A DNA stretch of 64,000 nt from Monocercomonoides exilis PA203 (lineage: Eukaryota > Protista > Preaxostyla): positions 496,001 to 560,000 of the forward strand of contig LSRY02000040.1 in assembly GCA_001643675.2 (NCBI GenBank). The letters are read 5' to 3'. The notes below the pieces were generated by a model. The model was not told the DNA's origin, did not search any database, and saw only the letters and a program-made list of their open reading frames with translations. Made by a program: the position numbers and the translations under genes. Positions 1,168 through 23,851 of this stretch are shown here, piece after piece. The first letter of the stretch is position 1, and the number at the start of each line of letters is the position of its first letter.

Positions 1168-3248
1168 ATGAGTCTTAGCCTAACAGCAAGGCGGTTAAGA
1201 GATTTGCATGATACATGCTCATCTGTTTTGCGTGTTGTTCGTTTGGCAAGGCCTTATGATAATTCTGTAATTGGAGAAATGATTCGTGTTGTTCATTTGA
1301 TGCTGTTACTGGATAAAGCTGGTATTGATCCACACGATGCGTATGATTTCAATTTAAAGTTCATTGTCATATATTATTAATGTTAAACAAATTTTTTAAG
1401 AGAACATTCTCGACCTTTTCAAGAATTTTTACCTTCTCTTGCTTCTTTTTACTCTGAAATTTTGCGTTCAGAGAGCCCATTAGAAATGAGAGCTGAAGTC
1501 TATTCTTCGCTTAGTACTATTAGCTTAAATCTAAAAAATCCAGCAAATGTATCAGCATTTATGTCAAATAGAGTGATTCATTCATTACTTGACATTCCTG
1601 TTGATTACACGAACAACGAACTGTTATCTTATTATATTTCTACCTTACGATCATTAGCTTCTCGAATGGATATGACAAATTATCACTATTTTTTTAGAAG
1701 GATTGTTTGAGCTTAGATATTCTTTGAAATTTTTCTTTTAAAAGTCTGAGTTTCTTTATATTTTTAAGAATGGAAAGCTAGAAATGCCTATTTTTATATA
1801 TGCCGTTAAGTATTTTACCAATCCAGACAATCTCATTAAAACAGCCTGCCGTTCCATCATATTGACAATTCTAAAAGTGAAAGCACAACCGATTTTGGAG
1901 TATGCTGCAGACATGGATAATCCATTCCTGCACCACTTCACGGTCTATCTGATGGCGCTCTGCTATGACATTGCGAAGGCCAGCAGCACGACAGCCGCAG
2001 AGGAGGAGTTCAGAGAGTTCTACCTGAGGGGAGCTGGCGATGAAGGGGGTGACGAAAACAGCAGTGATTTCTGCGACGGGGAAGAGCTGGACAGCGAAGG
2101 CGAGGAGGAACCGCACGCGCTGCTGGTGTCTTCTCTGCTGTCGTCGCCGCCCCAGCTGCAGTCGCCAGAGACGCGCATGCTGTTCCGCATGCTCTTCATC
2201 GGCGACTCGGAGGCAATCGACGAGAAGAACAAGATCGTGTCCCAGTTCGCCAGCATGTACGCCTCCACACCTGCTGCCAAATTCTTTGATGCTGCAGGAC
2301 TCCCGCTTTCATCTGCCCCTTCTTCTTCTTCTTCTTTTTCTCCTTCTCATTCTCCTCCTTCTCCTTTTTCTTTTTCATCATCATCATCTTCTTCTTCTTC
2401 TGCAACCTCAACAACATCATCATCTGACAGCATCACTTTCGGATCCAGCTTCAATTCTGGCAATGGCTTTGGGTTTGGCACTGATACAAACGAGCAAAAC
2501 ACTCTGTACCCCTTTCCTACCAACTCCTCTTCCATCTCTTCCATCTCTTCCACCCCTTCTGCCCCATTTGCCTCAATCGATTCAATTCCGCCATTCAATC
2601 CATTTGCTTCATCCGCCTCTTATTTTCCCTCTTCCTCATTTGCCTCTTCTGCCTCTTCTGCCTCTTCTGCACAGTCAGCCATGCGCCAAGCCGAGCTGGC
2701 CGCGCAGTTTGTGCCCCTGGGCGATCTCCTGTCCGACTTCTCTGAAACCATCCTCATCCTGTGTGACATCATCCGCCTCGACTCACTCCTCCTCTCACAC
2801 TCCGTTGCTCGCCTGCTCATCGCCAACCTCATCGTCCCTCTCGCCCAGCAGTTCTGGCGCGTGCCTTGCGTACCGTTCTACTCGGTCTCAGCTGCCAGAT
2901 GCAAAGGGGAATATGCGCTGTGGAACTATCATCTTTCATCTGAATCATCCTCCTCCTCCTCCTCACCTTCTTCTTCTTCAATTGTTCCTTCTACTCTTTC
3001 TTATCTTTCTTCTCCAAATTATAACACAAATGCAAACATAAATGCAAATGCCAATCCAACAAGCTCAACATATCCTGCATCTATTGACACAGATGAGCAT
3101 CTTTCTTTCTCCTCTTCACAGCCTTCAGACACAAACAGCTCATTCACCATGCTCAACTTGCATTGTAAAGAGCAAAAATCACTCAGAATCAAAGGAGCAA
3201 CCAACATGCAATGGCATGCTTCTCCTTCTGATGCCACACTTTCCTATG

Positions 3249-3279
<31 letters not shown>

Positions 3280-6200
3280 TTCTTCCTCTTGCTCATCATC
3301 ATTGCAATCATCATCATCATCATCATCATCATCTTCTTCTTCTTTTTCTTCCTCTTCCTCTTCCTCCTGTGCAGCCCCTCCCTCTCTCTCCATCACCCCT
3401 CCTCCCAATCTGCTCCAACTGCCCACCATTCCCACCTCTTTGTGCCTTTTCCTCTTCACCACAATTCTTTCTTCTTCCCTTCCCCCTATCATCACATCTG
3501 CTGTGTGTTCAGTGCTGTCTTTCTCTGCCAAGCCACTCGCTTTGTCTTCTCTTGCGTCTCATCCTGTTGAGTTGCTTTCGATTTCTCGTTCGCTTCATCC
3601 ATCTTCTTCATCATCTTCATCGTCATCATCTTCTTCCTCTTCCTCTTCTTCTTTGAATAAAAGAAATTATTTAAATGCATCTTCATTGTCTGCATCATCA
3701 ACGTCTTTTGCATCTTCTTCTCCTTCTTCCTATTTGCGAAACGAATTTCTTTCTTCTCTTTCTTCTTCTTCTTCTTCTTCTTCTTCTTCTCCTTTTTCTC
3801 CTTCTTCTTCTCAATCAGAATTTTCTGACAGTCGTCGTTACAACTTAACAGGCTCCACAACATCGGCACTTCCAATTCCTCTTCCCGAATTCCACACGAA
3901 ATTCAGCCAAAACAAAGCAAAAGACAAAAACTCAGAAGGAAATTCTTCTGTTTCGTGTGCTGTTCCTCGAGGGATATTTGAAGGGCTGACGGATTTGCTC
4001 ACAGGGCAGCCGCTGGATGCGCCAGAGCCATTGAAATTGAATGAGAAGAAGGAAAGGAGGAAGAGGAGATTGGGGAAGGAAGGGAGCGAAGAGGTAAAAT
4101 TTAAGGAAGGGAAAGAAAGGAAAGAAGGGGAAGGAAGAGAAAGAGGAGGAGGAGAAGAAGAAGAATTAAATAGAGAAGAAGAAGACGACGACGAAGAAGA
4201 AGAAGAGGATAACAAATTAGGCATCATTAGCAAAGCCCACAAACAGCTTTTTTCCTTCTCAATTTCATCTCCATCCAATACCCCAAACACAAACTCAAAA
4301 TATCCCTCGTATCCTTCATCAACCATCAACTCCTTCACAAACAATCCATCATCTTTCTCTTCTTCTTCTTCTTCTTCCTCCTCTTCTTCCTCTTCTTCTT
4401 CCTCTTCTTCTTCCTCCATCTCATTCAAGTTCTATTCCTATCTCCCCTCCTTCACTCTCCTCTGCACCCTGCCCAATGCCACAAACATGCTCCTTTCTCC
4501 TTCTGTGCACAAGAACATGTCCTCTCTTTTCGACATCGACCGCAGACCCACCCGATTCTTAACCAGACAACAAAGAGAAGAGGCGAAGAAGAAGAGGGAA
4601 GAGAGGGAAGAGAGGGAGAATGCGATGAGAATACAGATCGCGTTTATGCAGACCCCTCCGATGCCGCACGAGGATTTCCACAATCCTTTTGCTAACTCTC
4701 AGTTTCCGCTTCCTCTGTCGTTGCTGCTGGCAAGGAAAGAGGAGAGGAAGAAGATGGAAGAGAGGAAGAAGGAGAAGGAGAAGAAGGAAGAAGAAGAAAA
4801 GGAAGAAGAAGAAAAGGAGAAAAATCGAATGGAAGGCAGTTCAAATGCTCATTTGGTGTTGTCGCCATCTTCTTCCTCTTCCTCTTCTTCTTCTTCTTCT
4901 TCCTCTTCCTCTTCTTCATCTTCTTCTTCCTCCTCTCCCCCTCTTCCTCTGTCTCCTCCTCCTCCTCTTCTCCAGTGGAGTGGGGTGGATGCAGAGAGAG
5001 CGGTGAGTGAGTGGAAGGAGAACGCGAAAGAGATTCCGTGGCAAGAAGAAGATGAGGAAGATGAGTTGGAATTGGAGCTGGAAGCGCTGGAAGAGGATTG
5101 GAGTGAAGAGGAAGAAGGAGAAGGAGAAGGAGAAGGAGAGGAAGGAGAAGAAGAAGAAGGAGAGGAGGAGGAAGAGGAAGGAGAGGAAGAAGATGGGAAA
5201 GACGAAGACATTGATGATGATGATGATGATGATGATGAGGAACAAGAATATAGAAAGAAAGAAGAAGGCGAAGGAGGAGAAAGAAGAGGAGGAAAAGGCG
5301 ATAATGATGAAAGAGAAAGAGAAAGAGAAAGAGAAAGAGAAAGAGAAAAAGAAAGAGAAAAGGAAAGGGAAAGAAAAGAAGAAGAGGTAGATGAAGATGG
5401 ATATGTGAACATTGAGTCTGTAAAACCTTTTTCATTTGCTTCAAATGCAACTGAAGCAAACACATCAGCAGCAAAAGGCAAAGAAGAAGAAGAAGAAGAA
5501 GAAGAAGAAGAAGACGATGATTCAAGCGCATCCAATGACGGATCAATCAAAACAAAGAAATTTCTTTCTTCTTCTTCTTCCTCATCTTCCTCCTCCTCAT
5601 CTTCCTCTTTCTCCTCTTCCTCTTTCTCTCTTTCACAATATGACCTCTCCACTCCCACCACGCCCTCCTCTCCTCCCTTCCCAAGCTACGTTCCCCCGCG
5701 GCGCATGAACATCCCTCTTCCTCCGTCTTCCGCTCTCACTCGCATTCGAAACGACACTTCCCTCTTCATCAAAGGAGAACTGTCTGGGTTTGACACACTT
5801 TGCTCGCTGGTGGCGTCTGACCCGCTGCTCAGTGCGATTCTGCCGCCGTCTCTGCAACAGAAGCAATCGAAAGAGAAGATGAAGGGGAAGATGAATGAGG
5901 GAAAGGAGAAGAAGGAGAAGAAGGAAACAAAGCAGATGAAGCAGATATCTGATAGGAAACAGTTGAATGCTAATGCTTCTTCATCCTCCTCTTCTGCTTC
6001 TTCTGCTTCTTCTGCTTCATCCACATCCTCCAAAGCATCTGTGATTCCAACAGGAAATTCTGCAAATACTGTCAAATTGATCGCAACTTCAACTACCACA
6101 ACAACAACTAAAACAACTGTAACAGCTTCATTTTCCAATTCTCCATCGCTTTCTCCTTCCTCTTCCTCTTCCTCCTCCTCTTTCTCATCATCTTCTTCCT

Positions 6201-6373
6201 CTTCCTCTTCTGATTCCTCCAATACACTCATTGCTTCATCATCATCACAATCCTTCCCCCTTTCCCTCACAACCACACACGCCTCTCTCTCTGCCCTGGC
6301 ACTTGCCTCCTTCGCCATCTCCACAAGTTCGGCAAGCACATCCCTCCAAAACGACATTGTCCGGCAAACTGTT

Positions 6374-6405
<32 letters not shown>

Positions 6406-9400
6406 CAACTCCCTTTCTCTGTCTCCCCCCATCGCCCTCAGCACCACCAACCCCTTTTCCTCTGTGCCTTCCCCAAACCTCTCCCCTTCCTTGTCTCCGC
6501 AGCAGCTCGTCTCTCTTTTCAGCACTTTGATGCTCCTTTCTGGATCAGTCCCTTCTTCTCTGTCGTCGTCCATCAGAAATTTGGAGGTTGTGGAAGGAAT
6601 CGTGCAAAGGCACATGCATTTGGCTGAGGTGGCGGCGCTGAGGAGGGTGAACAGGCTGAAGAAGAGAGAAGAGCTGAGGTTTGAGATGCGGCAGCAGAAG
6701 AAGCAGAACCTGCTGAACGAGCTGAAGTTCAGGAAGGAGTGGCATGTGACTGGGAATAATAATAATAGTAATAGTTATGCTTATTCTAATGCAAATGCAA
6801 TTTCTAATTCAAATATGAATACAAGTGCTAATTTAAACAGTTTTTCAAGCTCGCTTCCTTTGAATTCTTCTTCTTCTTCTTCTTCTTCTTCTTCTTCTTC
6901 TTCTTCTTCTTCTTCTTCTTCTTCTTCTTCTTCTTCCTCTTCCTCTTCTTCTTCCTCTTCACTTTCTCCTTCTTCCTCTGCTGTTTCACTTTCCACACTT
7001 TCTCCTCTCAAGCAGCTCAAGTCTGCCACCCAAACACAGCTTCCCTTGCGATACCACTCTCCTTCAATTTCTCATTCTCTTTCTCCTTCTCCTTCTCTTT
7101 CTCTCTCTCAAACCACAACACAACTTCCGTCCCAATCTCAAACACAGCTTGTCCGCAGAGAAAGAGACAGAGAAAGACCCAAAGGTTTCATTCCATTTGT
7201 CCCGTCTTCCCCTTTCGTCGGCTTCAGCGCCTCGACATTCTCAACCCCACGCATCTGCAGGGAATATGCGCTGGGCTGGTACAAGGAGATAACAAAACTC
7301 CATTCACAGACCGATTTTGTGTGTTTGCTGTTTCAGAGGATGCTTCTGACACCAATTCGAACGGCGTCGGCGTGTGATGCGAAGGAAAACACATTGGCAC
7401 AGCTGATTGCAGAGCACAACAGACAGATGGCAGGGGAGAGAGAGAAGAAGGAGAAGAAGGAGGAGGAGAAAGAGGAGAAAGAGATGAGCAAAGAAAAGAG
7501 GATTGGAGGAGCGAATGAAAAAGATGGTGAAGTTAATTCAGGAATAGTAACAACAACTACTATATCATCATCATCACCTTCTTCTTCTTCTTCTTCTTCT
7601 TCTACTTCTTCCTCCTCCTCTTCTCATCCTTCTCCAATCAACCCAATCGACACCACACTCTCCCCGGCAAATCTTGCTGCCTTCCCTTCTCATCAGACAG
7701 AAGTTCTGATTGATGATTGCCTCCCTCTGTCAACTCTGCTCTTTCTGTATGCTTTGATACAAAGTCCGCACACTCCTCATTCGTATCTGAAGGAAGTGGG
7801 GCTGGCTCCTGTGTTTAGAAGGAATTACTTGAGATCCTCTCGAAAAAAGGTGGAGAAACAAGAAAAGGAGAAGGAGAAGGAGAAGGAGAAGGAGAAAGAA
7901 AGAGAAAGAGAGAGAGAAAGAGAAAGAGAAATATCTATTGACAAGCTGAGAAGGAATGAAACAGGAAACAAACACTCAAAATACTCTTCTGAACTTCGCA
8001 ATGGAAGTAAAAAAAGCAGAAGAGAAAGAAACAAACACAGAAAAAGTAAGCACATAGGCAAGAAATATTCCAAGCATTTCTCTTCAAATCAAAAAGATGA
8101 CAGAACAACAAGAAGAATGAGCAGCAGCCATCGTTCTAACTATCGCGCGCTTTGCCGTTCTGACTCACCTGCTAACAGAAGTACTGCTGTTACAACGTCA
8201 CACAATAACAACAACAGATTTAATAACAACAGTTATAACCAATCAATGAAGCATTTATCTGCCTCTCCCTCTCACTTTGGAGGTTATTCGCATGTTCATT
8301 CTGACAGCAGAAGCAGAAGCAGAAGCAGAAGCAGAAACAAAAGAAGCAATGGAAGAAGAAGAAGTTGTTGTTCAACGCAATTTCATCACAGTCAATTGTC
8401 AACTCTTTCTTCTTCAATGTCTTCTTCGATTTCTCATCCACATTCGCATTCCTCTTCTCGTGATTCATTCTCATCGTCATTATCATCATCTCCTTCTTCT
8501 CTTTCATCCTCTTCTTCTTCTTCTTCTGCTTCTTCCTCTTCTTCTTCCTCCTCTGTTTCTTCATCTTCTTCCTCTTCCTCTTCTTATTCTTCTAATACAC
8601 ACCACCATTATCCATCCCACCAACACGCCAAACACAACACCCGAAATCTTTCCATTTCGCACTCACGTTTTTCTCCTTCTCCTTCTCCTTCTCCTTCTCC
8701 TTCTCCTTCTCCTTCTCATTCGTCTTCTCCTTCTCCTTCTCATTTGCTTCGCCCATCTTCTTCATGCCGTCGATCTTTCCACTCCTCCCACTCGTCATTC
8801 ACCCCTTCCTCCTCTCTCTATCGCTCACACAGCAGCTATTCCTCTAACACTTCTGATAGCAACAGAATCAACAAAAGAATTAGTAGATTCAGCAGAAGCA
8901 ACGAAAGCAGCAGAAGTGAGTCAGTTTCGCGCTATCGTCGGATTCCTTCGCTTTCTCCGTCTTTTTCTCCTCCGTCGCAGTCGTTTTTCCCATCCCCGTC
9001 TCGTCAGGAGAGCTGTTTGGACACGAAAATAAGCACAAACACACACACAAACACACATTTTGACAATAAGACACCCAAAAAGAGCGATAAAAGATTGAAT
9101 GAATATTCCATTGTGCACCGTTCAAATGTGAGGGCGCATTCAAAAAAGGAAAGAGAAAAAAACACAAATTTGAGTTCAATTAGAGAGACAGAGGGGAGAA
9201 TAGGAAGGAGCATGAAAGATAGAGAGAGAGAGAAGGAGAAGGAGATGAAGGGGAAAGAGAAAGAGAATGCAAGCATTATTAAAGCAAAAGGTCAAAATTC
9301 AAGGGAAATCAATCAGAAAGCTTCTAAACAAGCAGAAAAGACTATAAAGACAACAAAGACAACAACAACAGCAACAAACAGAATGAAAGAAGGGAAAAGC

Positions 9401-11868
9401 AAGATAAGTGCAAGCATAGCAATACGTAGCACAGGAAGCAAAGCACAAAAATCTGCTCACCTCCATTCTTCTCTGTCTTCTTTATCTTCTCATTCTCGTT
9501 CTCGTTCTCCTTTTTCTCGTTTGGACTTCGAAAGAAGCAGTGCTTCTTCTGAAGCTGATGACAAGGCAGTCAGAAAGCTGAAGAAAAGAGCACTGAAAAA
9601 GGCAGAGCTGATGCAGCGGCTGCCAACCACGTTCCATTTCGCAGCTGCGATAGAGAAAGAGAAGGAGAAGGAGAAAGAGGAGAAGGAGAAAGAGAAGGAG
9701 AAAGAGAAGGAGAAAGAGAAGGAGGAAGAAAGAGAAGGAGAAGCAGCAGGAGAGAAAGAAAAGAAGGACAAAAAGAAGGACAAGAAGAAACAAAAACAAA
9801 AACAGAAACAGAAGCAAAAAGAAGGAGGCGGAAAGAAAGGCCAACAGCAATCTTCAGAGCAATCCAGCGAAAGGAGCAAAGACGACTGGGATTTGCCCTT
9901 GTTGAGCGATCAGAGCAGCAGCAAAGCGAAGCTGAAGGCGCAGAAAATGGAGAAGAAATGGAACAAGAGGAAGAAGAAGCTGGACAGAAGAAAGAGGCTT
10001 CAAAGGCTGATTGGCAGAATTACACAGGAAGCAAACACATCTTCGGCACATGCATCAGCAAGGAGTGGGAGCGAAGGGAGTGAGAGTAAGTTTGAACGGA
10101 TGGGAAGAAGCAGAGGAGGAAGAGAAGGAAGAGAAGAAAGAGAAGGAAATGAAGAGAAGATGAGGAAGATGGAGAAAATGGAGAAGATGATGAAGATAAA
10201 AGAGAAAAATGGAAAAGCTGGGAGTTCGAGAAGAGATGAAAGGAAATACCAGAGAAGAGGAGAAGAAGAGGAAGAAGAGGAAGAAGACTATTACAATGAT
10301 TCCGAAGAAGAAGAGAACAGCAAATACAAAGATAGAAGTCAAGGGGGACAAAACTACAACCGTTTCTATTCGAAGGAAAGAGGTCGAAGAGAAGAAGAAG
10401 AGGAAGAAATAGAAGAAATAGAAGAAGCAACAACCACACTTCGTGATGCCTCTAATCCCCGAGGAGCATATGCCCCTGCCAATTACTTGTCCTCTGCTCG
10501 CACCACATTCACTGCAGTCACAGGGACCATCGCCACCGCTGCCTGCACTGCGTCTGGAAGCAGCACTGTCCTGAGGAGGAAGGAGGCGCTGCTCGAAGGC
10601 GGGCGAAAGCTGATTGTGGTGCTGACGCCTCTGAACGAAAGATCGCGCCTGCTCTTCACTCTGCTCACGGGAAGCGCGCGTGAAAGCGTGCTTTTCCCGG
10701 CCAACCAGCCGATGTCTGTGCTTGTGGACACACTCTCCAAGCGCTGGGGGATGATTCCGGATGTGTCGCTGCGTCTCTGTGTGGATCCGCTGCCTCTGAG
10801 GACGAAGCACTACGAGAAGCTGATCAACAAGACTGTGCCGATCACGAAGCGTCACCAAGGGCTGGATGATGAGCTGCCTGCGCCAAAGGACCTGAGAAGG
10901 GCGGGGAAGATGATTGAGTCGGAGCGCATGGCAAAGGGATTTGACAAGCTGAGAATTGACACGCTGGTAAGGGCGAGGATGGCACAGCTGCCGGTCTGGG
11001 CGCAGGCGAAGGAGGAGGCAGCGATGGAGTCGTATGGGCAGGAGGACAGCGATGTGCTGCTGGGTGCGCTGGCAAATGAAGTAGTGCCGCTCCACAAGGA
11101 GACGCTCTTCTTCTCAGTTTTCTTCGACAAGGCAGATGAGAACAGCACGGACGATCCGATTCTCCAGTACATCCTCGACAACACGCAGAAGACGCTGTTC
11201 TCTTCAGACATCTCTCCGTTCCCGCTTCCCCCTCCGCGCCACTGCGAGGTGAGGGAGATGCAAGTGGCTGCACCTTCTGTGCTGGAGTTTCTGTGCGACC
11301 CAAACCACCCAGCATCTGGGTTGAGCGCCTTTGCAGCAAGCGGGATAGGGTGGGGCGATTCGAGTGAAGAGCGCCTGAGGAAGAAGAAGATCAACGAGAT
11401 GATGAAGAAAAGGAAGAAGAACTCGTTTCAGTCGTTTGTGGAGACGGTGAACCAGGCAAAAGATGAGAAGGAGAGGAAGAAGATGGAGAAAGCAAGGCTA
11501 AAGATGCTGGATCCAAAGGAACGAAGACTCATCAAGCAGCAGAGGAAAGAGGAGAAGAGGCTGGCGAAGAGAGAGAAGAGGAGGAAGATGATGCTGATGG
11601 CAGCTGAGATGAACAAGAATAAGGCAGTATTTGAAGGAAGAGAAAGAGGAGAGCTGAGAGAGAGACAACTGATGCAGCAAATGATGGAGCAGCCTCAGAA
11701 TTCGTTGGGACAGGCAAGATTGACATTGAATTCTTCTTCTTCCTCTTCCTCTTCCTCTTCTTCTTCCTCTTCTTCCTCTTCTTCTTTTGAAAGGAATTCG
11801 CAATTGAAGGAAATTGAAAGTTCGTTGAAAGATATACAAGGAAGAGAAAGAAGGAAAGAGAAAGAGAA

Positions 11869-11901
<33 letters not shown>

Positions 11902-14900
11902 GAAAGAGAAAGAGAAAGAGAAAGAGAAAGAGCATGTCACAGGAGAAGCAGAAGAAGGCGAAGAAGAGCTGAATGCGGTTGAGATCTCAGACATCAGCAC
12001 AGAGGAATTTGAGGAAGAGGCAGCGAAATGGATTGCTGATAACTCAGACATTGAGACAGAAAGGTTGGATCTTCCGCTGGAAGAGATAGACTTCACAGGC
12101 AGCTCAAGCGAGTCTGCTCACTCGCAGTCGACTTTCCCTTCGAAAATCAGCCGGTTCAGCTTTTGCAGCGAAGGGAGGAGCAGAACAATTGGAAGGAAAG
12201 GGAGGAAAGGGAGGAAAGGAAGGAAAGGAATGCGGAGGAGAAAGATGAGGGGGCTGTGGAGAGAGGAAGGAGAGGAAGGAGAGGAAGGAGAGGAAGGAGA
12301 TGGAAGAGTAGACGATGAAGAAGGAGAAGAAGATAAAGTGACTGAGGAAGACGGGATGGAAGAGAATGGAGAGAATGAAAATGGAACATTGTGCTTCAGT
12401 GAGGCGGAGAAAGAAGGCATTTACAGAAAGGCAAAGAAGAGTAAGAAATACAAGAGAGAGAAAGAGGAAGGGAAAGAGGAAGAGGAAGAGGAAAGGAACG
12501 AGAAAGAGAGAATGAGCGAGGAGATAAGGATTATGAACTACCATTCCGCAGAAAGAGGCGAAGCTGATTATTCGAAATCTCAATCTCTAAATGGAAGCAC
12601 ACGAACAATTGGCATATTTAACAGACGTTATCACAAGAGAGAAGCGAATGAAAGGGTGAATGTTCTCATAAAGCACAAGCCTCTTATCACAGAAAAGTGC
12701 CAGCGGTATGTTGCGTTTGCGATGACTGATCCGTCGCAGGCAGGATTCAGAGAGAAAGAAGAGATAAACAATAACAGTTGTAATAATAATAGAACTAACA
12801 ATAACAATACAAGAAGCAATTGCAATGGAGATAACATTTCACATGTCTCAAAGAAAAATCTTTTTTGTCGCAAGCAAAAAGTCAAAATCATCCGAAAAGC
12901 AGCAAATGTGCCGAAGAAGGCGCCTCGAGGGTTGCCTTATGAATACGACTGCAGAATGATGGACGCGATCATCTCTTTGCTCTGCTCAGCAGTGAGGCCG
13001 AAAAACGAAGAATTCATTGAAAACAACAAGGAAAGAAGTGATTTCAAAAGGAATCAGTTGAATTCAAATAGAGATCTGGCATCGCCTTCATCATCATCAT
13101 CATCATCATCATCATCTTCTTCTTCTTCTTCCTCCTCTTCCTTATTCCTCTCCACACGCACTTTGCCCTGTCCTCCTCCTCTTCGCCCAATTGTGGTTGA
13201 CTTGTGCTGCCGGCTGATTGTTGAGATGCTGCGGCAGACGACAGAAAAGAACAATGCTTTTCTGAAGAGAAGACGAGCACTGAAGATACAGAATGCACAT
13301 GATGAAAGAGGAGAAAGAGGAGGAAGAGGAGGAAGAGAAAAGGAAAAGGAAAGAGAGAGAGAAAGAGAGAGAGGAAGAGGAATAAGCAGAGGTTATGGAA
13401 GCAGTAAAGATGAAAGGAAGAAGAAGGGAGAGAAGAAGAAGAATGAGACACAACAAAAGTGGAATGCTGACAGCAAAGCAGATAAATCCGACAGCCAAAG
13501 AAGGCAAAGCAATGAAAGAACAAAAGGAAAAGGAGGAAAAGGAGGAAAAATTGGAAGAGAAGGAGAAAGAAAAAGAAGAAAGAAAAATAAAACGAAAGTG
13601 ATTTCACAACCAACAGCTCCACCGGCTCAGTTAAGCTGGTGGCATGCGATGCGTTTGAGACAAGTTTTTGGCTTTTTGTTGGCAGATGTTGCTTCTCTGA
13701 CAACACCTTCCTTCACAAATGTTCCCTTTGACGCTGTTCCAGCTGGATTGGAGGAGAAGATGAGGAGTTGGCTGGGACTGCCATCACAGAATTATAAATC
13801 GAAGCAGTCCACTTCTGGTTCTGAGACTTCTTCTTTTTCTTCCTCTTCCTCTTCTCCTTTAAATTCTTCTCCTCCTTCTTCTTCTCCTTCTCCTTCAACC
13901 ACCAACGGAGCAGTCTGGCCTTTTCTCCGTCTGTTTTTCGATGTGTCTCCACGAAACACACGGAAAAACGTGGCCCCTTCGAAATTCGCTGCGACAAAGC
14001 GAATTTCGCCTCTTTCTGCTGAATTTTGCTTTGATGATCCATTGGATGAAGATGCTGATGATGCTAAGAGTTATAATGATGATAACAATAACAATAATTA
14101 TTGCTCTTCTTCTTCTTCTTCTTCTTCTTCTTCTTCTTCTTCTTCTTCTTCATTAGCCTCTTCCTCTTCCTCTCCTTCATCATCACCTTCTTCCTCTTCC
14201 TCTTACTCTTCTTCCATTTGCTCCATCAATTCATTCCCAATAATTGCTCCTTCTCCGTTCACTCCTCACTTTGCTGACATGCTCTTTGAAGAAGTTCGAA
14301 ATTCTCCTTATTCCCTTTCTCTTCTCAATCAATCTTCTTCCTCTTCCTCATCTTCTCTTTCTTCCTCTTCCTCTTCTCTTTCTTCCTCTTCCTCTTCTCT
14401 TTCTTCCTCTTCCTCTTCTTCTTCTTCTTCTCCTCTTTCTTCTCTTTGTCTTTCCTCCAAATGCAACTTTTTTATAGGCCATCCTCTTTCTTCTCCTTTG
14501 GACATGGAGATTTTGATGAACAGACCCGTTTTGCTCCTTCCAACTGTCGATTTGCAGCTATCTCTAATGCATTTGATACAAAAACCAAGAAAACGATATT
14601 TTTCTTCTTCTTCTTCTCCTTCTTGCCCTTCCTCTTCCTCCTCTTCCTCCTCTTCTTCTTATCAATTTAGTCCAAAAATTCGTTCTCTTCCTTCTCCAAG
14701 CACATTGCCGCAAATTTCATCATCATCGTTATCATCATCATCATCACCTTCTTCTTCTTCTTCTCCCTCTCCTTCTTCCTCTTCTCCTCAGCCTTCAGAT
14801 GTTCCAGCTTCAACAGCATCATCTTCTTCTTTGTCCCCTTCTTCTCATCCATCTCCTTCCTCCTTTTCTGCTCCTTCTTCTTCCTCTTCTTCCTCTTCAT

Positions 14901-17307
14901 CATTTTCCTCCTCCTCCTCTTCCTCCTCTTCCTCCTCTTCCTCTTCTTCTACTGCTTCTCCAACCAATTCTTCTTCATCACCTTCATCACCTTCTACTTC
15001 ATATTCATCAATTCTTGATAATTTTCAATCTGCTCACCAAAGCTCTGCTTTAATTAACAAACCTTCATCCTCTTCTTATTCATCCTCCATCTCTTCTTCT
15101 TCATCTTCATCATCATCATCATCATCATCTTCTTCTTCTTCATCTTCATCATTATCATCTCCTTCTCCTTCTCCTTCTCCTTCTCCTTCTCCTTCTCCTT
15201 CTCCTTCCCCATCTCCTTCCCCTTCCACCGATCTCGCCCTCTCCTCTGATTTCAAGCGCCCCCGCTTCTTCATCCGCCCGAAACGGCGCCGAAAAGCTAA
15301 AGACGTTCTTTCCTTCTGCACAATGCCTTCATTTCGTGATGATTTGAGCATTGGCTCTTGCTCCACAGCCGATTTGACGTTGAATTTCACCACATTCAAT
15401 CAGAATGCGTTTGCTTCTCAGAACAGGCAGGGGAATCGCTTTTCGCAGCAGATGGGTCATAATCAGCATCAGAGCTTTCACCCAGCCAGCCTTCACGTCT
15501 CTTCAGCGTATGAACAATATCACAGTAATAACAGCAGCAATATCAAAAGCAATAATATTAATAATAATAATAATAACACAAATAATCATTTTAACCCCTG
15601 TCACAGCCACACTCACAGCCTCCTCAGTTCCTATGACCACCTCAGCGCTGTCAGTGCATTCAGCGCTTTAAGCACCCCCGCCCACTCAATAGCAGCCACA
15701 CCCTTCAGCAGTGAGTGTGAAAGCGTGTCTCAGATGTCTTCGAGCGCAGATGAAGAAGATGAAGCAATCAATGGATATCTGAAGCTGATGCAGCTGCAGG
15801 ACGGCTCGTTCAATTTCGATGCGTTTGAAACGCAGAGCGGAAGGATGGCGGAGTTTGGAGATGGAGGAATGAGGAACAGAATGAGCGATGGAATGGATAA
15901 TCCATTGGATTCTGGTGTGAATGACAGATTAACTGACAGATTTAACAGAGGAGCAAACAGTGAATACAGTGTTGATTACAGTTCCAGTGTGAACAGCAAG
16001 TATTTGAGCAGCGGTGCAACTGCAATGAGGATGCGAAGGCAGCACATTGTCCCTTTCAGAAGCAATTCGGTTTCTGCTTCTTTTTCCTGTTCAAGTTCGA
16101 ATTCGAGTTCTAATTCAAGTTCTTGTTCTTGTTCTGGTTCTGTTTCGTCTTCTTTGGCTGCTCCATCAGTTGCTTCGGTTGCTTTGACAACAACTTCATC
16201 ATCATCAACTTCTTCTTCTTCTTCTTCTGATTTAGGTTCAGATTCTTTGTTCCATGATGCAATATTAACTTTATCACCTTCATCATCATCATCTTCTTCT
16301 TCTTTCTCTTCCTCTTCTTCTTCTTCTTCCTCTTTCCCCCTTCCTTCTCAATCTTCCCCTTTCTCTGATATTGCTCCTCTTCCTCTTTCCTTCGCAATTA
16401 CTGGCCCTCCTCTTCCTTCTCCTCCCAAAATAACCTCCAAAATGCAAACTAAACAGCATCCTCTTCAAGATTCATTGTTGGTGTGCAAACTGCAACTTAT
16501 GGACAACTCTTCTTCTTCTCTTTCTTCCTCTTCCTCTTCTTCATCTTCTTCTCCGTATTTCACCATAACCTCTTCTTCCTCTTCTCCTTCTTTTTCCTCT
16601 TCCTCTTCCTCCTCCTCTTCTTCTCCTTCCTCCTCTCCTTCTCTCTGGACGTCTGTGAGGAAAGCCAAAGAAGAAGTGTATCGTTCTCCACACAATCCTC
16701 TTGAGCTGTTCCAGGCAATGAACGAAGACCCAGTTAATTCCTATGAAGTGATAGAGAAAGAAGGAAGGAAGATGAATAATAATAATAATAACAGCAATGC
16801 GATGAAAAAGAACAATAAGGATAACTTTGTTGCTGCTTCGTCTTCTGTCGTGGTTAGAGATGAATTAGAGGGAGAAAGGAATATGTCTTCTTCTTCTTCT
16901 TCTTCTTCTTCTTCTTCTTCTTCTTCTTCTTCTTCTTCTTCTTCTTCCGTTCCATTTTCTTCTTCCCCTTCCTTTTCGAAGCCTTCTTCTTTTCTTTCTT
17001 CTTCCCCTCTTTTAACAACCTCTCCTCTGCTTATATCTCCTTCTCCTTCTCTTTCTCTTTCTCATTCTCCTTCTCCTTCTTTCGCCTCTTCTCTGAAATC
17101 TTCACCCCTTCCTCGAACATCACCTTCATCATCATCTTCCTCTTCCTCTTCTTCTTCTTCTCCAATTCCTTTGCCTCTTCCTCTTCCTCTTCCATTGCCT
17201 TTATCTTCACAATACCCTTTGCCTTTGCCAATGCAGATGCCTTTATCATTATCTTCTTCTTCCTCTCCTTCCTCTCCTTCCTCTTCCTCCTTTTCTTCTT
17301 CTCCTTC

Positions 17308-17340
<33 letters not shown>

Positions 17341-20300
17341 TTCCTCTCTTCCTTTCCCTCGCTCCTCTTCTCTTATTCCATTAGCCCCACAGGCACAGCC
17401 AGACGCCATCGCTGCTTCTATTCTGATGCCTCTCACTGGAGACAAAAAAGACATTGAAACAACAGCAAAAACAGGAAAATTAACAGAAATAACAGGAAAA
17501 TTGAATGGAAGAAAGAACGAAAAAATGAATGAAAATGGATTTGAAAAAGAAAAATTCAAAGTAAAAGACAAAGAAAAAGAAGGCAAAGAAGGCAAAGAAG
17601 GCAAAGAAGAAGAAGAAGAAGAATTCAATTCGTTCACAAAAATCACACAAAACAATAAAAACAATAAAAACAATGAAAACAACCAAAAAGCGACGGAAAG
17701 TGATGTTATTACAGTGTGGGAGCTGACAGGCGACTTGGCACATGTTCAGAAGCAGGTGGTGAATGTGAAGTCAGACAAGATCATCAGAACAGAAGATGAA
17801 CAGTCAATTTCTGTACTCAACATTGGTGGTGGTGGTGGTGGAGGAAGAGAAGGAAAAGAAAGAGAAAGAGAAAGAGGAAGAGGAAGAGAAGAAAGCGAAG
17901 AGGAGAAAGATGAAAGAAATTTTGATGGAAGGGAAGGAGCAGAAGATGCAACTGAAGAAAGATCAAAAGACGAATTTTGCATTGGAATTGCAGAAGGAAA
18001 TACGAATTTTGACAAGGCATCTTGTTTGGAGATTCCAAATGAGCAAATGTCTTCTTTTTCTTCCAACCCCTCTTCTTCTTCACCCTTCGCTTCCTCTTCT
18101 TCTTCTTCTTCCTCCTCCTCCTCCTCCTCTTCTTCTTCTTCCTTCGATCTCTCCGACGACCTCTTTCCTATCTCCAAGCCCCGCCCTCATCTGAAGGACA
18201 CACCTGCTCTTCTTCCCTTTCCCCGTGCCAATCATATCCCTCTCTGCCTTCGCGGCGCAGTGAACGAAGCAGAAGCGCTGAAGATGGCATTGCAAAGAGC
18301 TATTTGTGTGGCAGGCACGCTTTTGAGGGTGACTGACAGAAAAACGGAGGTGTCGGGAAGGTTTGGCTCTTTGTTCTATGGAGCGTTTTGCTGTGAGAAG
18401 GAGAAGAATCTGCAGGCGGTGCTGGAGAAGGAAGAGGAAGAGGAAGAAGAAGAAGAAGAGGAAGAAGAAGAGAAGGAGGAAAAAGAGGAAGAAGAAGAAG
18501 AAAAAGTGAAAATTGATAAGAAAACGAAAAATTCTTCTTCAACTTCTTCTTCGAATGAAAAGAAGAAAGAAAGAGAAGGAAGAAGAGAAGAGAAAGAAGA
18601 AAATAACAAGGATGTGAATGCTCAACCTATTATTGCATCATCTGCTTCAGCCACACCTTCTCATTCACCTTCTCCTTCTCCCTCTCGATCACCTCTTCTT
18701 CCTTCTTCTTCTCCTTCTCCTTCTCCTTCTTTGTCTTTAACTTCATTCAAAAAGAACATCAACTATGAAAACTCAAAATCTTTGCGCCCTCTTTTCTCAT
18801 CTGATATGCTTCCTCTATTAGCCAAGTATTCTCCAAAACCTTCTTCACAAACAAATTCTTCCAGACAATCAACCTCTTCTTCTCCTTCTCCTTCTCCTCT
18901 TCCTCCTCCTTCTTCCTCCTCCTCCTCTTCTTCTTCTATTTTATCTTCTCTTCTTGAACTACTCAACCCCCGTCTCCCTCTTCTTGGGGAGAAAATTTCA
19001 GTTTCTGCTTCTGATTTGCTGCCAAACAGCTTTCCTTTCATTCCTCCTCTTTCTTCTCTTGTTTTGTCACCTGATCTCAATCCTTCGTTGTGCAATGCTT
19101 TATCTTCATTGAAATACTTAGACACATTAAAAGGGAATAATAATCATTGTTATTGCAATTTTGATAGCTTTAATTCTTCTTGTTCTTCCTCCTCCTCCCC
19201 TTCTTCCCCTTCTTCCTCTTCTTCTTCCTCTTCCTCTTCCTCTTCTCCTTCTCCTTCTCTCCTCTCTCTCCTCTCCTCCTTCAGTTCCTCTCTCTTCTCC
19301 TCCTCTCCTTTCTTCCCCTGCCGTGCGGTCATCAGCAAACAAGAATCGCTTGTCTTTCTGAGAATTGAGTCTTCATTCATTTGTGGCTACATCATTGAAC
19401 CTCCTCAGCATCATTTGAACATTGCACAGTTAAACAATGCATTGGGTTCTTCTCTTTCTTCTTCTCGTTCTCGTCCTTCTCCTTCTCATTATTCCTCCTC
19501 CTCCTCCTCCTCTTCTTCTTCTTCATTGCAATCATCTCAATCCCCCTTCAATTTGAATAAACAAAGCAGCAATATTGCAACTCAAATGAACAACCAACAA
19601 GCCAAACAGAAGAACCCCTCTTCAAAATTGCCTTTCCCTTTTTCTCGTTCGCTTTCTCCACAGCCGCCACAGAATCGCATTGTTGGATCAACTAAATATG
19701 TGAATTCTTTGATTAATGATAAAATCTCTTCTTCCTCTTCTTCTTTCTCCTCCTCCTCCTCCTCATCATCTTCTTCATCATCCACCATCTACACCCTCAT
19801 CCGTGTGATGCAGATGCCTCTCTCTCACTCTCTTCTCTACCAAACAAAGACCTCTCCTCTTCATCTCCTTCTCTTTGAGCATTCGACGGATTCTTTGATT
19901 GCCATCAGCTCAAAGGAGATTGTGAACGACGTGTATGGAGAGAGAGAGGCAGCGAAATATCGATTGAGGTACGAAGAAAAGAGAAGGCAAGCAGAAATAA
20001 ACAGAAATGAGAAGATGAAGATGAAGAAGAAGAAGAAGAAGGTGATGATGATGATGGCGAATGGAGATGGGAATGTGATAAATAACAATAATAATAACAG
20101 TGGAATGAATGAAAGATCAGGATTAGGAGAAAGAGGAGGAGAAGGAGGAGAAGGAGGAGAAGGAGGAGAAAGAGAAAGAGGAAGAGGAAGAGAAGGAGGA
20201 AGCATCATTGGATGTGCGTTGGAAGAGCAGAATGGAAAGATGATGGCATATCAACAACATCAACCTTATCAACAATCCCAGCAGTTTCAATGCTCACAAG

Positions 20301-20890
20301 CACATTCTTCTTCTCCTTCTCTTTCTCATTCGCCTTCTCATTCAAGATCACCCAGCCACTCCACGCTGTTCTCTGCACTTGACATCAACCCTGCCTATAT
20401 CCCTCCTCTCACTTCTGCTTCTTCTTCTTCATCCTCCTCCTCCTCCTCTTCTTCTAATCCTTCTTCTTCTTCCTCCTCCTCTTCTTCTTCTTCCCAATCA
20501 CAATCTCCTCATCTCCACCGCTCAACCACACTGCCCACACCTCAGTCTCCTGTAAAACTGTCTTCTCCTTCTCAGAACACTCAAACTAGCTCCCCCCATT
20601 TGCTTCTCTTGCTCCACGGATTCGGATGTGGCTGCGGTTGTGGCAGTGGTTGTAATTACGAACGTGATAAATGCAATGCAGATAAATCTTATTCTTCTTC
20701 TTCTTCTTATTCATCATCATCTTCTTCTTCTTCTCTTTCTTCTTCTTCTTCTCATTCTCCAACCTCTTTTTCACCAGCTGCTCGCTCGAAGAATCAGCAA
20801 AGAACTCGTTCGCAATCTCCCTTCAATCACACAGCCTCTTCTGCCACTGCTGCTTCTTCTTCTGCTACAAAACAAATAATGTCTTCTTCT

Positions 20891-20940
<50 letters not shown>

Positions 20941-21394
20941 TGCCAATTCTTCGATTGTTATCGTTACCAAATCCGATACATCTCCAAATTCTCTTTCCTC
21001 TTTCGAAATCGTTCAACCTTTGTCTCTTTCTCCATCTCCAAATATCTCTCCTTCTTCTTCTTCTTCTTCCTCTTCCTCTTCTTCTTCTCATTCTTCTCCT
21101 TCTCCTTCTCCTCTCTCTTTCGCTCTCCCCTCCCTCAAATCTCCTGCCCTTCTCTCTTCTCTCTTCCTCAACAAGCACAACATTTCTCGTCCTTCTCCTT
21201 TGTTTGCCAGGCTGTTCAGAGCAAACCTCAATGCTGCTCCTTCATTTGGCGATAAAAGAGGACTTCAATCAAATATTGGAAAATTCTCTTCTTCTGCTTC
21301 TTCTTCTTCTTCTTCTTCTGCTGCTGCTGCTGCCACTGCTTCTGCTTCGTGCAATCAATCAGCAGTAACATTAGCATCATTTATTCCCTCTTCG

Positions 21395-21433
<39 letters not shown>

Positions 21434-23851
21434 ATATCTTCTTCTTCTTCTTTGTCTTCCTTCACTTCTTCCACTTCTTCCTCTTCCTCTCGCCTCTTCC
21501 CTGAGAATGCCACGCCCTTCCGCCCTGTCAGCCCCACAGAGCAGATGAGACAGACATTCCATGCAAACAACCCCTGGCTACTCAGAAGCTGCTCTCAGCC
21601 TCGTCTTCTGCCTTCACACGTGCAGAGTAGAATAGCAGCAGATGAGGTGCTTCTTTGGAATGGTTGGAAAGAAAAAGGTGAAGAAGGAGGAGTGGAGAAG
21701 AAGGAGAAAGAGAAGGAGAAGAGGAAGAAGAATAGAAAAAGAGTAGGGAATAAAAAGAAATGCAATGAAATGACAATATCTTCATCTTCCTCATCAGAAG
21801 TGAAAATGAGTGAAATCAGCAGACGAAGCAAAAGGAATGCATTAGAGCAGCCATCAAAACTCCAACAGGATGAGTTGCTTGTGTCAATGATTGCTTCGAC
21901 CCTTCTGCTCATCCCAACATTCACTGCCTCCACTCTTTCCTTCATCAGATGCAATAGTTATCTGCCATCTTCATTATATCCATTGTCTTCTTCCTCCTCC
22001 TCCTCTTCCTCCTCTTCCTCCTCTTCTTCTTCTTCCTCCTTCAACTATTTCCCATTCCTCCCCACAACTTTCTCCCTCCACCCTTCTCATCTTCGCCCCC
22101 GCAGCCAATACCTCCTCCTCTTCGCCTCTGCTTCCACTGCAACTTCATTCGTAGCCACTGTTTATTTGCGAAAGGCTCTTCTTTGCACACTTAGAGAACA
22201 TGTGCTTGTGAATTCTATGCAAAACGAGATGATTCTGTGTGGGTTTGACCAGACGCTAAGGAAGAGGAACAAAAGAGAGGTGTTAAGGCAGAGGCAGAAG
22301 AAGGCGAAGAGAGAGAGGAAGTTTTTGCTGCGGGTGAGGAGGAGCTATGCGAAGCAGTCACTTTTGGAAGGGAAGGAAGGGAAAGAAATGAATAGGGATC
22401 AGAAGGGAGGAATAATATCTCGGTCAATGAATGCTATTTCTTCTTCTCCTTCATCCTTTTCTTCTCCATTTGCTTCTCCTTTTGATTCTTCTGCAAATGC
22501 AATCCAAGTTTCTGGTTTAATTTCTTCTTCTTCTTCTTCTCCTGTGAAGCGAATGAATGTGCTGTTGGGAAGCAATTGGAGAGGGAAGACAAAGAGAAGA
22601 GGGTGGAACGAGAGAGAAAGAGAAAAAGATGAAGAAAGAGAAAGAGAAAGAGAAAGAGAAAGAGAGAAAGAGAGTAAGAGAAAGGTAATTACTGTTAATG
22701 CCCATTCAATTACGTATGCAGATGATGCAATAAGGACAGGAATGTTGAACAGTCCGCGAGAAAAGCTCAAAATGCGAAGGAACACGAAGAACAAGACAGC
22801 AGCTTTGTTCACTGCGATGCTGAAGAACCCGTCATCAGACACAGAAGATGAGGAAGAAGGGGAAGAAGAAGAGGAAGGAGGAGAAGAGGAGGAGGAGGAA
22901 AGAGAAGGAAGAAGAGAAGGAGAAGGGAAAAGAAGCAATTCGAATGCAAAAGGAGTTAATACAAAGAGCAAACGGAAGAATTTCAGAGGCAGTTCGAATT
23001 GGAAGGAAGATGCAGACACACAATCAGAAGATGATCTTTGGACGCCTCTGAAGCCACAGGGCGAAGAAGCTGATGGGATTTCGTATGAGTCTGGAATGGA
23101 TATGTACAAGATGAACTCAAGGAAAGAAGGAGGAGAAAGAGGAGAAAGAGGAGAAAGAGAGGAAGAGAATATTCAGCTGTCAAGGGGAAGACAAATGTTG
23201 GAAAAGTTGCCTTCTTCTTCTTCTTCTTCTTCTTCTGGCTCTTCTTCCTCTTCAACATCATCATCAACTTCTACAGCACAACCAATGAACTCAATGAACT
23301 CACAGCAATCGCTGACTCTTCCAGCTCTTTCATTCACCACAGCCACACTCTCCACACAGTCAACATCAAATGCGTCCTTCACAGGCTCTTCTCATCCATC
23401 TCTTTCTTCTCATTCATTGGAGCAGCCAAACTCACCCACCAAGTTTCTTTCATCTGTTTCTATTCATTCTGCTCAATCTTCCCTCTCTGCTCGATCTACT
23501 CAATCTGCCCAGTTTTCACTGTCTGGCAGCCAATTTACAGCAGATGCCTCTCATTCACAAGGAGAAAAGACAGAACAAACAGAAAAAACAGAACAAACAG
23601 AACAAACAGAAAAAACAGAAAAAACAATAAACACATTCAATCCTCGGTCAATAGAAGAGCCCAGCGAAGACGAGAGCGAAGAATCTGCTCTGTCTGAACT
23701 GGATGACTCGCCATTTGCGCTGCCTCCTTCTTTCACGACCACTCCTTCCTCTGAAATGGAGCTCACTTTCCTGCTTTATTCAGCTTGCCCTTCTTTTGAC
23801 TGCCTCTTTGCTGCATTGCTGGCAGCGAGAAGAAGGCTCTTTCGGAAGTAG
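1168..23851 (+). CDS. CLEC16A: CLEC16A/TT9/GOP-1 family (FPL domain) endolysosomal trafficking protein, massively expanded by low-complexity inserts (~7,519 aa)
   Basis: Exons 1168-1340, 1401-1704 and 1769-23851 join in frame (introns GTATGA..AAG and GTTTGA..AAG). FPL domain 'FMSNRVIHSLLDIPVDYTNNELLSYYISTLRSLASRM..YFF..IYAVKYFTNPDNLIKTACRSIILTILKV' resembles CLEC16A 'LLSNNYVNSII..FDFSDEEIMAYYISFLKTLSLKL..FF..AIKFFNHPESMVRIAVRTITLNVYKV'. Later CLEC16A-like motifs recur in order to ~22,200. Confidence 0.88.
6864..6960 (+). repeat. (TCT)n/(TCC) coding microsatellite (poly-Ser), representative of dozens in this gene and in C2CD5
   Basis: Long near-perfect TTC/TCT run read as ~30 Ser. Confidence 0.9.

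Follow-up and report, generated by a model that had tools for sequence, protein, structure and literature searches.

Animal CLEC16A has been described as having E3 ubiquitin ligase activity, partnering with RNF41 and USP8 and playing a role in endosomal maturation; in mammals, the protein has also been assigned a role in mitophagy. The nearest named relative of the gene described here comes from a sister oxymonad, Blattamonas nauphoetae (KAK2962841.1, referred to as P0015 below), a gene prediction of 3,195 aa annotated as 'putative protein CLEC16A'. We analyzed a 64,000-nt stretch of DNA (the window; all coordinates are positions therein, and all features lie on the + strand) from Monocercomonoides exilis, an organism without mitochondria. 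Positions 1168–23851 constitute one intact three-exon gene of the CLEC16A (FPL-domain) family, whose phase-consistent coding sequence of 22,560 nt predicts a protein of ~7,519 aa.

Exon 1 (1168–1340), as read from the sequence, opens with an ATG at 1168–1170 and contributes 57 codons plus 2 nt; in BLASTP, its product matched residues 20–52 of P0015 (E 3e-5, 48% identity). Intron 1 (1341–1400; GTATGA...AAG) and intron 2 (1705–1768; GTTTGA...AAG) are GT..AG introns of 60 and 64 nt with a GC content of 17% and 22%, respectively, compared to 44% in exon 3, and both sit at matching places in the Blattamonas gene. Enclosed between them, exon 2 (1401–1704) encodes the main portion of the FPL domain: it scored 57.4 bits against Pfam PF09758 (curated cut-off, 26.1 bits; E 2.2e-15) and aligned to P0015 at E 4e-16 with 36% identity. 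The profile is continued at its positions 118–148 by the start of exon 3, and a profile scan of the M. exilis genome recovered the FPL locus again (55.2 bits). Exon 3 (1769–23851) consists of 22,083 nt, or 7,360 codons and a stop, and about 73% of it is low-complexity filler. Just as the initial annotation had stated, this exon runs without a stop: there is none in its 7,360 codons, as opposed to 251 and 319 stops in the other two forward frames and 168–339 in the reverse frames over the same interval.

The same annotation had portrayed the gene as an 'exploded' CLEC16A, in which short family blocks keep their order between large inserts. This ordered architecture is corroborated by the Blattamonas protein: colinear similarity spans exon 1 through the final residues, and the colinear chain reached 516.7 bits, versus 121–200 bits for reversed or shuffled controls. 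Common to both are the three-exon layout, ~19 blocks in the same order and the C-terminal motif. They differ in low-complexity content, with 21% of P0015 but 73% of the M. exilis protein being masked, and in their inter-block spacers, all of which are shorter in Blattamonas. The stretching is therefore real but not a one-off, given the 3,195-aa Blattamonas protein and the presence of six giants in M. exilis itself. Word-indexed protein searches with region 2900–3300 of the giant frame, with the whole of P0015 or with its residues 1–1300 retrieved only P0015, from databases without own-genome records. Phylogenetically, the oxymonad proteins group in a single clade (support 99/96). Separately, an FPL fragment was seen on a metagenome contig (L001), in a gene truncated by a retroelement.

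In M. exilis, the six FPL genes of the giant type have open frames of 3,354–7,360 codons. The five further loci, whose open frames were located after neighboring 10-kb pieces of one contig had been placed end to end, have 3,354 (+1,318) to 4,816 codons; their blocks correspond to those of the giant and follow one another in an identical order, and the C-terminal motif is retained in four of them. This recurrence bears on whether the giant could be a fusion of several neighboring genes or an assembly artefact. Repeats are error-prone, and the M. exilis assembly is long-read based (PMC8767320); however, the locus is colinear end to end with one annotated Blattamonas gene, the layout from FPL to C-terminal motif recurs at independent M. 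exilis loci, and the frame contains neither a stop codon nor intergenic-type AT-rich DNA. We thus assign a fusion or artefact next to no probability.

Within exon 3, low-complexity inserts split the conserved core into ~19 colinear blocks. Four of them are present in all six paralogs: B1 (1775–2023), in which the FPL domain ends and a helix follows; B2 (2657–2917, around 2717), which matches P0015 residues 303–364 with 44% identity (E 2e-11); B3 (3401–3568, around 3428), with 64% identity over 22 residues (506–527); and B7 (7661–7858, around 7712), with 46% identity to residues 1181–1217 (E 1e-4). B4 (4421–4573) is restricted to oxymonads, being shared with P0015 (residues 554–589, 42% identity, E 0.003) and three paralogs. 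At 266 aa, B8 (10580–11374) is the largest non-repetitive island, and it has no canonical counterpart. It was absent from the initial list of blocks. B9 and B10 (12911–13273; around 12944 and 13181) are conserved with P0015 residues 1839–1899 and with two paralogs (C75 and C58), and B11–B13 (13607–14578; around 13643, 14270 and 14495), between which Ser runs are interspersed, with residues 1977–2144. The beta-rich B15–B17 (19286–20668; around 19319, formerly labeled 'PH-like') are conserved with residues 2617–2790 and the paralogs, and contain an invariant H-x3-C-x-C-x2-C motif. Finally, B19 (23726–23842) is the C-terminal motif ahead of the stop; 35 of its residues align with the end of P0015 at 43% identity, and four further paralogs terminate in this motif as well (E 5e-8 to 2e-16). 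Ten of the twelve blocks originally proposed fall within Blattamonas-conserved segments; of the others, the one around 18266 is weakly conserved and the one around 22109 was found in none of the paralogs.

We compared the block profiles by hhalign with 17 normal-sized canonical CLEC16A homologs (800 alignment columns), with exons and blocks searched singly. At colinear columns, B1 matched 181–272 (E 1.7e-8; reversed control, 0.25), B2 matched 258–307 (E 2.2e-5) and B7 matched 399–441 (E 1.7e-4; reversed control, 0.85). B10 was marginal at columns 481–507 (E 0.006–0.011), the best reversed control of the entire comparison being E 0.026. B3 scored only E 0.15, yet its match fell on the colinear columns 323–374. 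Only the first ~500 of the 800 canonical columns, up to about column 507, were matchable, and no block past ~nt 13,300 showed significant similarity to canonical CLEC16A in this profile–profile comparison. Restricting the template to columns 500–800 likewise gave non-significant results, B12 and B13 then landing best at columns 546–594 (E 0.7 and 0.12), and so did region-level profiles of B9–B13 and B15–B17. Most C-terminal blocks match noise, which explains why the best hhalign positions of the 19 blocks show no overall trend in order (Kendall tau −0.02).

As to Pfam, the alignment to FPL that had been anticipated was obtained, whereas the one to CLEC16A_C was not: hmmscan detected no PF19439 match in the whole frame, in ten islands or in the Blattamonas protein, with the caveat that the model has 767 positions of which canonical non-animal homologs themselves match only 80–190. 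Describing the blocks as CLEC16A-like, as was done initially, is statistically justified only at the FPL end, the blocks around 2717 and 7712 and—marginally—the block around 13181. The C-terminal blocks, conserved among oxymonads, are lineage-specific so far as sequence profiles show.

Structure models were of low confidence. For B8, AF2 returned a pLDDT of 45, and residues 6–70 alone, predicted as a beta-alpha-beta-alpha-beta unit, were moderately confident. The B15–B17 model (pLDDT 44.5) has five strands and a helix; its top shape match in the ESM Atlas was a 900-aa cluster of which 100% of the members contain FPL, at a TM of only 0.33. This shape match may serve as a weak structural lead to CLEC16A. 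Against the canonical C-terminal beta-rich (PH-like) part, hhalign scored B15–B17 at a non-significant E 0.46. An ESM Atlas feature search with P0015 residues 1830–2160 hit generic helical (dynein tail) clusters with low recognition and was uninformative.

The inserts between the blocks extend over hundreds to >1,000 residues and consist of in-frame polypurine/polypyrimidine trinucleotide repeats rich in Ser, Glu and Lys, with TCT/TCC encoding Ser and GAA/AAG/AGA/GGA encoding Glu/Lys/Arg/Gly. Ser accounts for 24% of the protein, ~73% of which lies in low-entropy windows, and Pfam scans detected no folded domain within the low-complexity inserts. TRF listed 118 rows in the frame, the period being a multiple of 3 in nearly all of them, compared to 5 arrays in 20 kb of adjacent non-coding DNA. 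Such period-3n inserts, placed between blocks conserved with shorter orthologs, identify the gene as a low-complexity-inflated ortholog. Each of the 52 pyrimidine tracts on the coding strand is in the Ser phase and none in the Leu or Phe phase, while the Ser runs use mixed codons. This strict phase argues for selection on the translated product and, together with the stop-free frame, supports the initial proposal that the reading frame is under selection for translatability. A neighboring C2CD5-like frame has 22% Ser and the Ser phase in 28 of its 30 tracts; inflation by repeat filler is a genome-wide tendency in M. exilis, of which the CLEC16A-family giant is an extreme instance.

Two mechanisms had been offered at the outset to account for the inserts, namely a fold that tolerates disordered loops or a removal of the inserts. 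Removal at the RNA level—through editing or through splicing, whether conventional or not—would leave a mature mRNA for a protein of ~1,000–3,000 aa. What speaks for it are two weak AT-rich GT..AG candidates, the only ones in-frame or near-frame, at 15508–15606 (99 nt) and 16733–16794 (62 nt). However, nothing would keep spliced-out sequence free of stops, hold its repeat periods at 3n or maintain a Ser phase; the GC content of the inserts is exon-like rather than the 17–22% of the real introns; and five paralogs and Blattamonas display the same architecture. The inserts hence do not qualify as hidden spliceosomal introns, and their stop-free, exon-like and Ser-phased nature favors full translation, rendering RNA-level removal highly improbable.

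Alternatively, full translation might be followed by proteolysis in the Ser/Glu/Lys linkers, or by protein splicing, to release smaller working pieces. In favor of this idea, proteases typically gain access to proteins at long disordered linkers. On the other hand, Pfam scans of the frame and the islands contained no match to a Hint/intein family, a protease or another processing domain, and the insert boundaries lack a recurrent junction motif in our alignments. Moreover, inserts also interrupt individual structural units, the beta-rich region among them, so simple cleavage would split these units. Protein processing is therefore very unlikely in our view, and we see no sign of a new insert-removal mechanism. 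The fold tolerating disordered loops is the mechanism that agrees with the data.

The studied copy exceeds its five paralogs in inflation by a wide margin (7,360 codons versus 3,354–4,816), and one of its sisters (C64a) already has a frame break within a pyrimidine/C-run tract. Both observations would suit a redundant paralog under relaxed constraint that, with five sisters covering its function, accumulates filler and, despite its open frame, may make a minor contribution or none. Yet all blocks shared with Blattamonas are kept, down to the final 35 residues, and 22 kb without a stop combined with a constant Ser phase in 52 of 52 tracts require that the translated frame still be under purifying selection. 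We consider redundancy unlikely.

Taken together, it is very probable that the locus is a single intact member of a six-paralog gene family, encoding ~7,519 aa in which core blocks alternate with fully translated repeat inserts. The core would comprise an FPL/alpha-solenoid N-terminal part, more helical blocks, the beta-rich region and the C-terminal motif. The inserts probably arose via in-frame expansion of polypurine/polypyrimidine trinucleotide repeats and, judging from the sequence, the whole frame is expected to be represented by a full-length mRNA and protein, in which the inserts would persist as disordered hydrophilic loops or linkers between folded elements. Selection would merely police them, tolerating no stops, frameshifts, Leu or Phe phase. 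The enlargement presumably proceeded in at least two stages, from ~3,000–4,000 aa attained by the common ancestor with Blattamonas to an approximate doubling in the studied paralog. Endolysosomal and autophagy trafficking is the likely function, as extrapolated from Ema, GFS9 and CLEC16A; mitophagy is impossible for the M. exilis protein because the organism has no mitochondria. That CLEC16A was kept, in six giant copies, without mitochondria fits an ancestral job in endolysosomal/autophagy trafficking rather than mitophagy. It is also conceivable, if quite unlikely, that the Ser/Glu/Lys spacers have a selected function in the six-member oxymonad giant family, e.g., as very long entropic tethers under phospho-regulation, or as scaffolds that form condensates at endolysosomal membranes; the family would then have expanded in a lineage in which the loss of mitochondria released CLEC16A from mitophagy.

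Our findings have a practical side, too. Since simple repeats were masked prior to gene prediction in the M. exilis annotation (PMC8767320), giant genes of this kind could have been broken, and their models deserve checking. The locus further provides a clean, alignable case of a trafficking protein diluted ~7-fold, with >70% low-complexity sequence, whose blocks, order and frame are kept, and the Ser phase of its pyrimidine tracts offers a simple signature of selection on the translated product.

In relation to known systems, the M. exilis protein shares with CLEC16A/Ema/GFS9 (TT9) the N-terminal FPL domain and helical blocks colinear with the 17 canonical homologs to about column 507 of 800. 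It departs from them in its length (~7,519 aa versus 750–1,217 aa in canonical matches), in the number of paralogs (six versus the usual one), in having an extra 266-aa block (B8) and a Cys motif without a demonstrated equivalent in canonical members, and in lacking a Pfam CLEC16A_C match. Its mode of growth has parallels in the homopeptide-inflated proteins of other protists. Dictyostelium has Gln/Asn tracts, and Eimeria has homopolymeric repeats. Plasmodium falciparum proteins carry homopeptide, Asn-rich inserts (PMC7534687). As in these organisms, in-frame trinucleotide-repeat inserts occur between and within the conserved domains of orthologs that are ordinary in other respects, hydrophilic loops are tolerated and the bias is genome-wide. 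The M. exilis residues, in contrast, are Ser/Glu/Lys/Arg/Pro, derived from purine/pyrimidine repeats, and the degree of inflation is extreme, at ~7-fold the canonical length and >70% of the protein.

The giant CLEC16A/FPL-family gene (1168-23851, + strand) consists of three exons (1168-1340, 1401-1704 and 1769-23851) separated by introns of 60 nt (GTATGA...AAG; GC 17%) and 64 nt (GTTTGA...AAG; GC 22%). Exons 1 and 2 together contribute 477 nt, which puts the start of exon 3 in phase 0; the CDS measures 22,560 nt and encodes a protein of about 7,519 residues. As the initial annotation had stated, the third exon (22,083 nt) lacks a stop: we counted none in its 7,360 codons, versus 251 and 319 over the same 22,080 nt in the two other forward frames and 168-339 in the three reverse frames. 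GC content is 44% in exon 3, versus 18-27% in the flanks and 17% and 22% in the introns; AT-rich parts of the exon are repeats coding for Asn or Lys, and it contains two GT..AG candidates, both weak.

The conserved blocks of this protein (B1-B19) are separated by low-complexity inserts, and overall it contains 24% Ser, 8% Glu, 7% Lys, 6% Pro and 6% Arg. TRF returned 118 rows inside the frame, nearly all with periods of 3, 6, 9 ... 57 and with units of pyrimidine (TCT/TCC) or purine (GAA/AGA/GGA) type; all but one (period 17 at 18559-18602) of the few rows with periods not divisible by three overlap rows with divisible ones. In the neighboring AT-rich, gene-poor 20 kb (37.4-57.8 kb), just five arrays occur, and the period is 1, 19, 20 or 25 in four of these; this argues that the repeats are a property of coding sequence rather than of the genome at large. 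Long open frames are scarce between 38000 and 57800 (GC 26-35%) and tandem repeats nearly absent, in contrast to the repeat-laden coding sequence on both sides. The genome papers on M. exilis report a simple-repeat share of 3.3% and the masking of classified repeats ahead of gene prediction (PMC8767320).

All coding-strand pyrimidine tracts of at least 24 nt (52/52) are read in the Ser phase, while the alternative phases would read mainly Leu or mainly Phe. The frame is intact, and selection acts to keep stops, frameshifts and hydrophobic repeat phases out of it, in line with the selection on translation that had been proposed from the sequence. Ser runs of six or more number 57 (the longest being 32) and mix TCT, TCC and TCA, with only seven built from a single codon; given these mixed codons, the runs are not all fresh slippage products.

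We presume that an mRNA of about 22.6 kb is translated whole and that the inserts would remain in the protein as hydrophilic disordered loops and linkers. The initial annotation had also considered removal of the inserts from either RNA or protein. Removal at the RNA level is very unlikely, because spliced-out sequence would not keep an open frame, a constant Ser phase and the exon-like composition that the inserts display. Excision at the protein level found no support, as we detected neither a Hint or intein domain nor a recurrent motif at the insert junctions; such excision, or proteolytic processing of the full protein, might nevertheless occur.

Family membership is clearest at the N-terminus. 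Exon 2 matches Pfam FPL (PF09758; E 2.2e-15, 57.4 bits, cut-off 26.1), and the profile carries on, at positions 118-148, within the opening 35 codons of exon 3. With exon 2 as the query, phmmer run exhaustively retrieved 39 proteins, most of 750-1,217 aa—compared with the roughly 7,519 residues here—and with FPL plus the start of CLEC16A_C. The length outlier was a 3,195-aa protein of the oxymonad Blattamonas nauphoetae, annotated as 'putative protein CLEC16A' (GenBank KAK2962841.1; hereafter P0015). The top match was an FPL-domain fragment (34% identity; L001:7094-7861) on a 10.8-kb eukaryote-like ENA metagenome contig (ERZ25071330), where reverse-transcriptase frames adjoin it.

The initial annotation had listed CLEC16A-like blocks along the whole gene and pointed to alignment with FPL and CLEC16A_C as a check. 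The FPL part held, but Pfam CLEC16A_C matched neither the giant frame nor its islands nor P0015. Because canonical (normal-sized) non-animal homologs themselves cover just 80-190 of the 767 positions of that model, we built a profile from 17 aligned canonical proteins (800 columns) and compared it with oxymonad block profiles by hhalign. This way, we recovered B1 (1775-2023, +; canonical columns 181-272, E 1.7e-8), B2 (2657-2917, +; 258-307, E 2.2e-5) and B7 (7661-7858, +; 399-441, E 1.7e-4), followed marginally by B10 (13151-13273, +; 481-507, E 0.011); B3 (3401-3568, +) fell in its colinear place (323-374) at E 0.15. Among 19 reversed controls, the lowest E was 0.026. Residues 15-347 of P0015 matched the whole-length canonical profile with E 3e-15. 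Past B10, neither blocks, restricted templates nor region profiles gave significant canonical similarity. Restricted matches of B12 and B13 were best at columns 546-594 (E 0.7 and 0.12, respectively), where an acidic 'FEEEW'-type motif and an 'LLP' motif of the canonical consensus resemble the blocks proposed at ~14270 and ~14495.

P0015 is colinear with the giant gene throughout. Exon 1 (E 3e-5) and exon 2 (E 4e-16) both match it, exon 3 does so in nine colinear BLAST segments, and a sensitive colinear chain joins 19 segments at 516.7 bits, versus 121-200 bits for reversed or shuffled controls. At the end of the pairwise alignment, the final 35 residues are 43% identical. The Blattamonas gene spans 9.7 kb for 3,195 codons and has two short introns, which match both M. 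exilis intron places. Given this colinearity from exon 1 to the C-terminal end and the corresponding introns, a fusion of several genes across 1168-23851 appears ruled out, as far as comparative data can do so.

Searching the 82.3-Mb M. exilis assembly, in which the window is C37:496001-560000, with the FPL profile, we identified six loci, and the DNA downstream of each of the five others runs into one huge open frame: C64b (C64:242373-255028; 4,108 codons), C58 (C58:708395-720250; 3,830), C37b (C37:895108-909863; 4,816), C75 (C75:29509-41602; 3,933) and C64a (C64:364232-378287; 3,354 + 1,318 codons with one frame break). Their Ser content is 17-30%. The C64a frames overlap at C64:374334-374629, in a pyrimidine tract with C-runs (CCCCCT units) and no intron-like sequence nearby; the break reflects a genuine frameshift or else a homopolymer error of long-read sequencing. 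Block HMMs made from the M. exilis/Blattamonas pair recovered these blocks from the paralogs without change of order: B1, B2, B3 and B7 in all six family genes, the C-terminal motif in five (the giant gene and four of the five paralogs), and 17 of the 18 blocks searched in C75. Of the blocks initially proposed, that at ~18266 recurred among paralogs in C75 only and that at ~22109 in none. Conserved blocks keep a conserved order in seven genes, and the giant CLEC16A-like family of M. exilis has six members. In a tree of the B1-to-B2 region, the six and Blattamonas form one clade versus ten canonical proteins (support 99/96), with the giant gene pairing weakly with C75 (86/80). As the tree does not resolve Blattamonas inside the clade, some duplications, if not all, may be older than the M. 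exilis/Blattamonas split.

The largest non-repetitive island, B8 (10580-11374, +; 266 aa), was absent from the initial block list and is common to Blattamonas, C75 and C58; canonical CLEC16A has a short linker there. Its structure model is poor overall, with a beta-alpha-beta-alpha-beta unit of moderate confidence in the first 70 residues. For a beta-rich region (P0015 2612-2800, five family rows), AF2 gave a low-confidence model (pLDDT 44.5) of five strands and a C-terminal helix, for which the ESM Atlas gave, as the top hit by shape, a 900-aa cluster with FPL in every member (TM 0.33 over 88 residues); coincidence would seem unlikely, but we take this match as a weak structural lead rather than a test. 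After this region, all six aligned rows (Blattamonas, giant gene, four paralogs) share without variation an H-x3-C-x-C-x2-C motif (~20600-20650, +) that could bind metal.

Inflation is staged, as interval sizes rise from canonical proteins through Blattamonas to the giant gene: from about 140 columns to about 880 and about 1,670 residues between B2 and B7, and from about 80 columns to about 700 and about 1,830 residues between B7 and B10. Genes for an S1 RNA-binding domain protein (500-982, -), the splicing factor Cwc15 (24599-25144, +) and an adaptin large subunit (25836-28874, -; split by at least one intron) are ordinary, separate neighbors. Beyond these, 30485-37300 (+) forms one uninterrupted frame of 2,271 codons, which matches the YbjQ-like domain of C2 domain-containing protein 5 (PF23025, E 8e-33) in three stretches; with 22% Ser and 28 of 30 pyrimidine tracts in Ser phase (the other two Pro), it encodes another trafficking-type protein inflated by repeats, close to the giant gene.

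Our literature search returned no paper naming CLEC16A together with Monocercomonoides, and six-fold CLEC16A-like paralogy in a mitochondrion-lacking organism adds modest interest. The giant gene shares its three-exon layout and block order with its Blattamonas counterpart, whereas low-entropy windows cover about 73% of its product versus 21% of P0015. It is extreme in degree, yet ordinary in mechanism. Conserved proteins inflated by low complexity occur in Dictyostelium and Eimeria. Such inflation is well known in Plasmodium falciparum (PMC7534687), and the giant gene represents an extreme case of the same kind.
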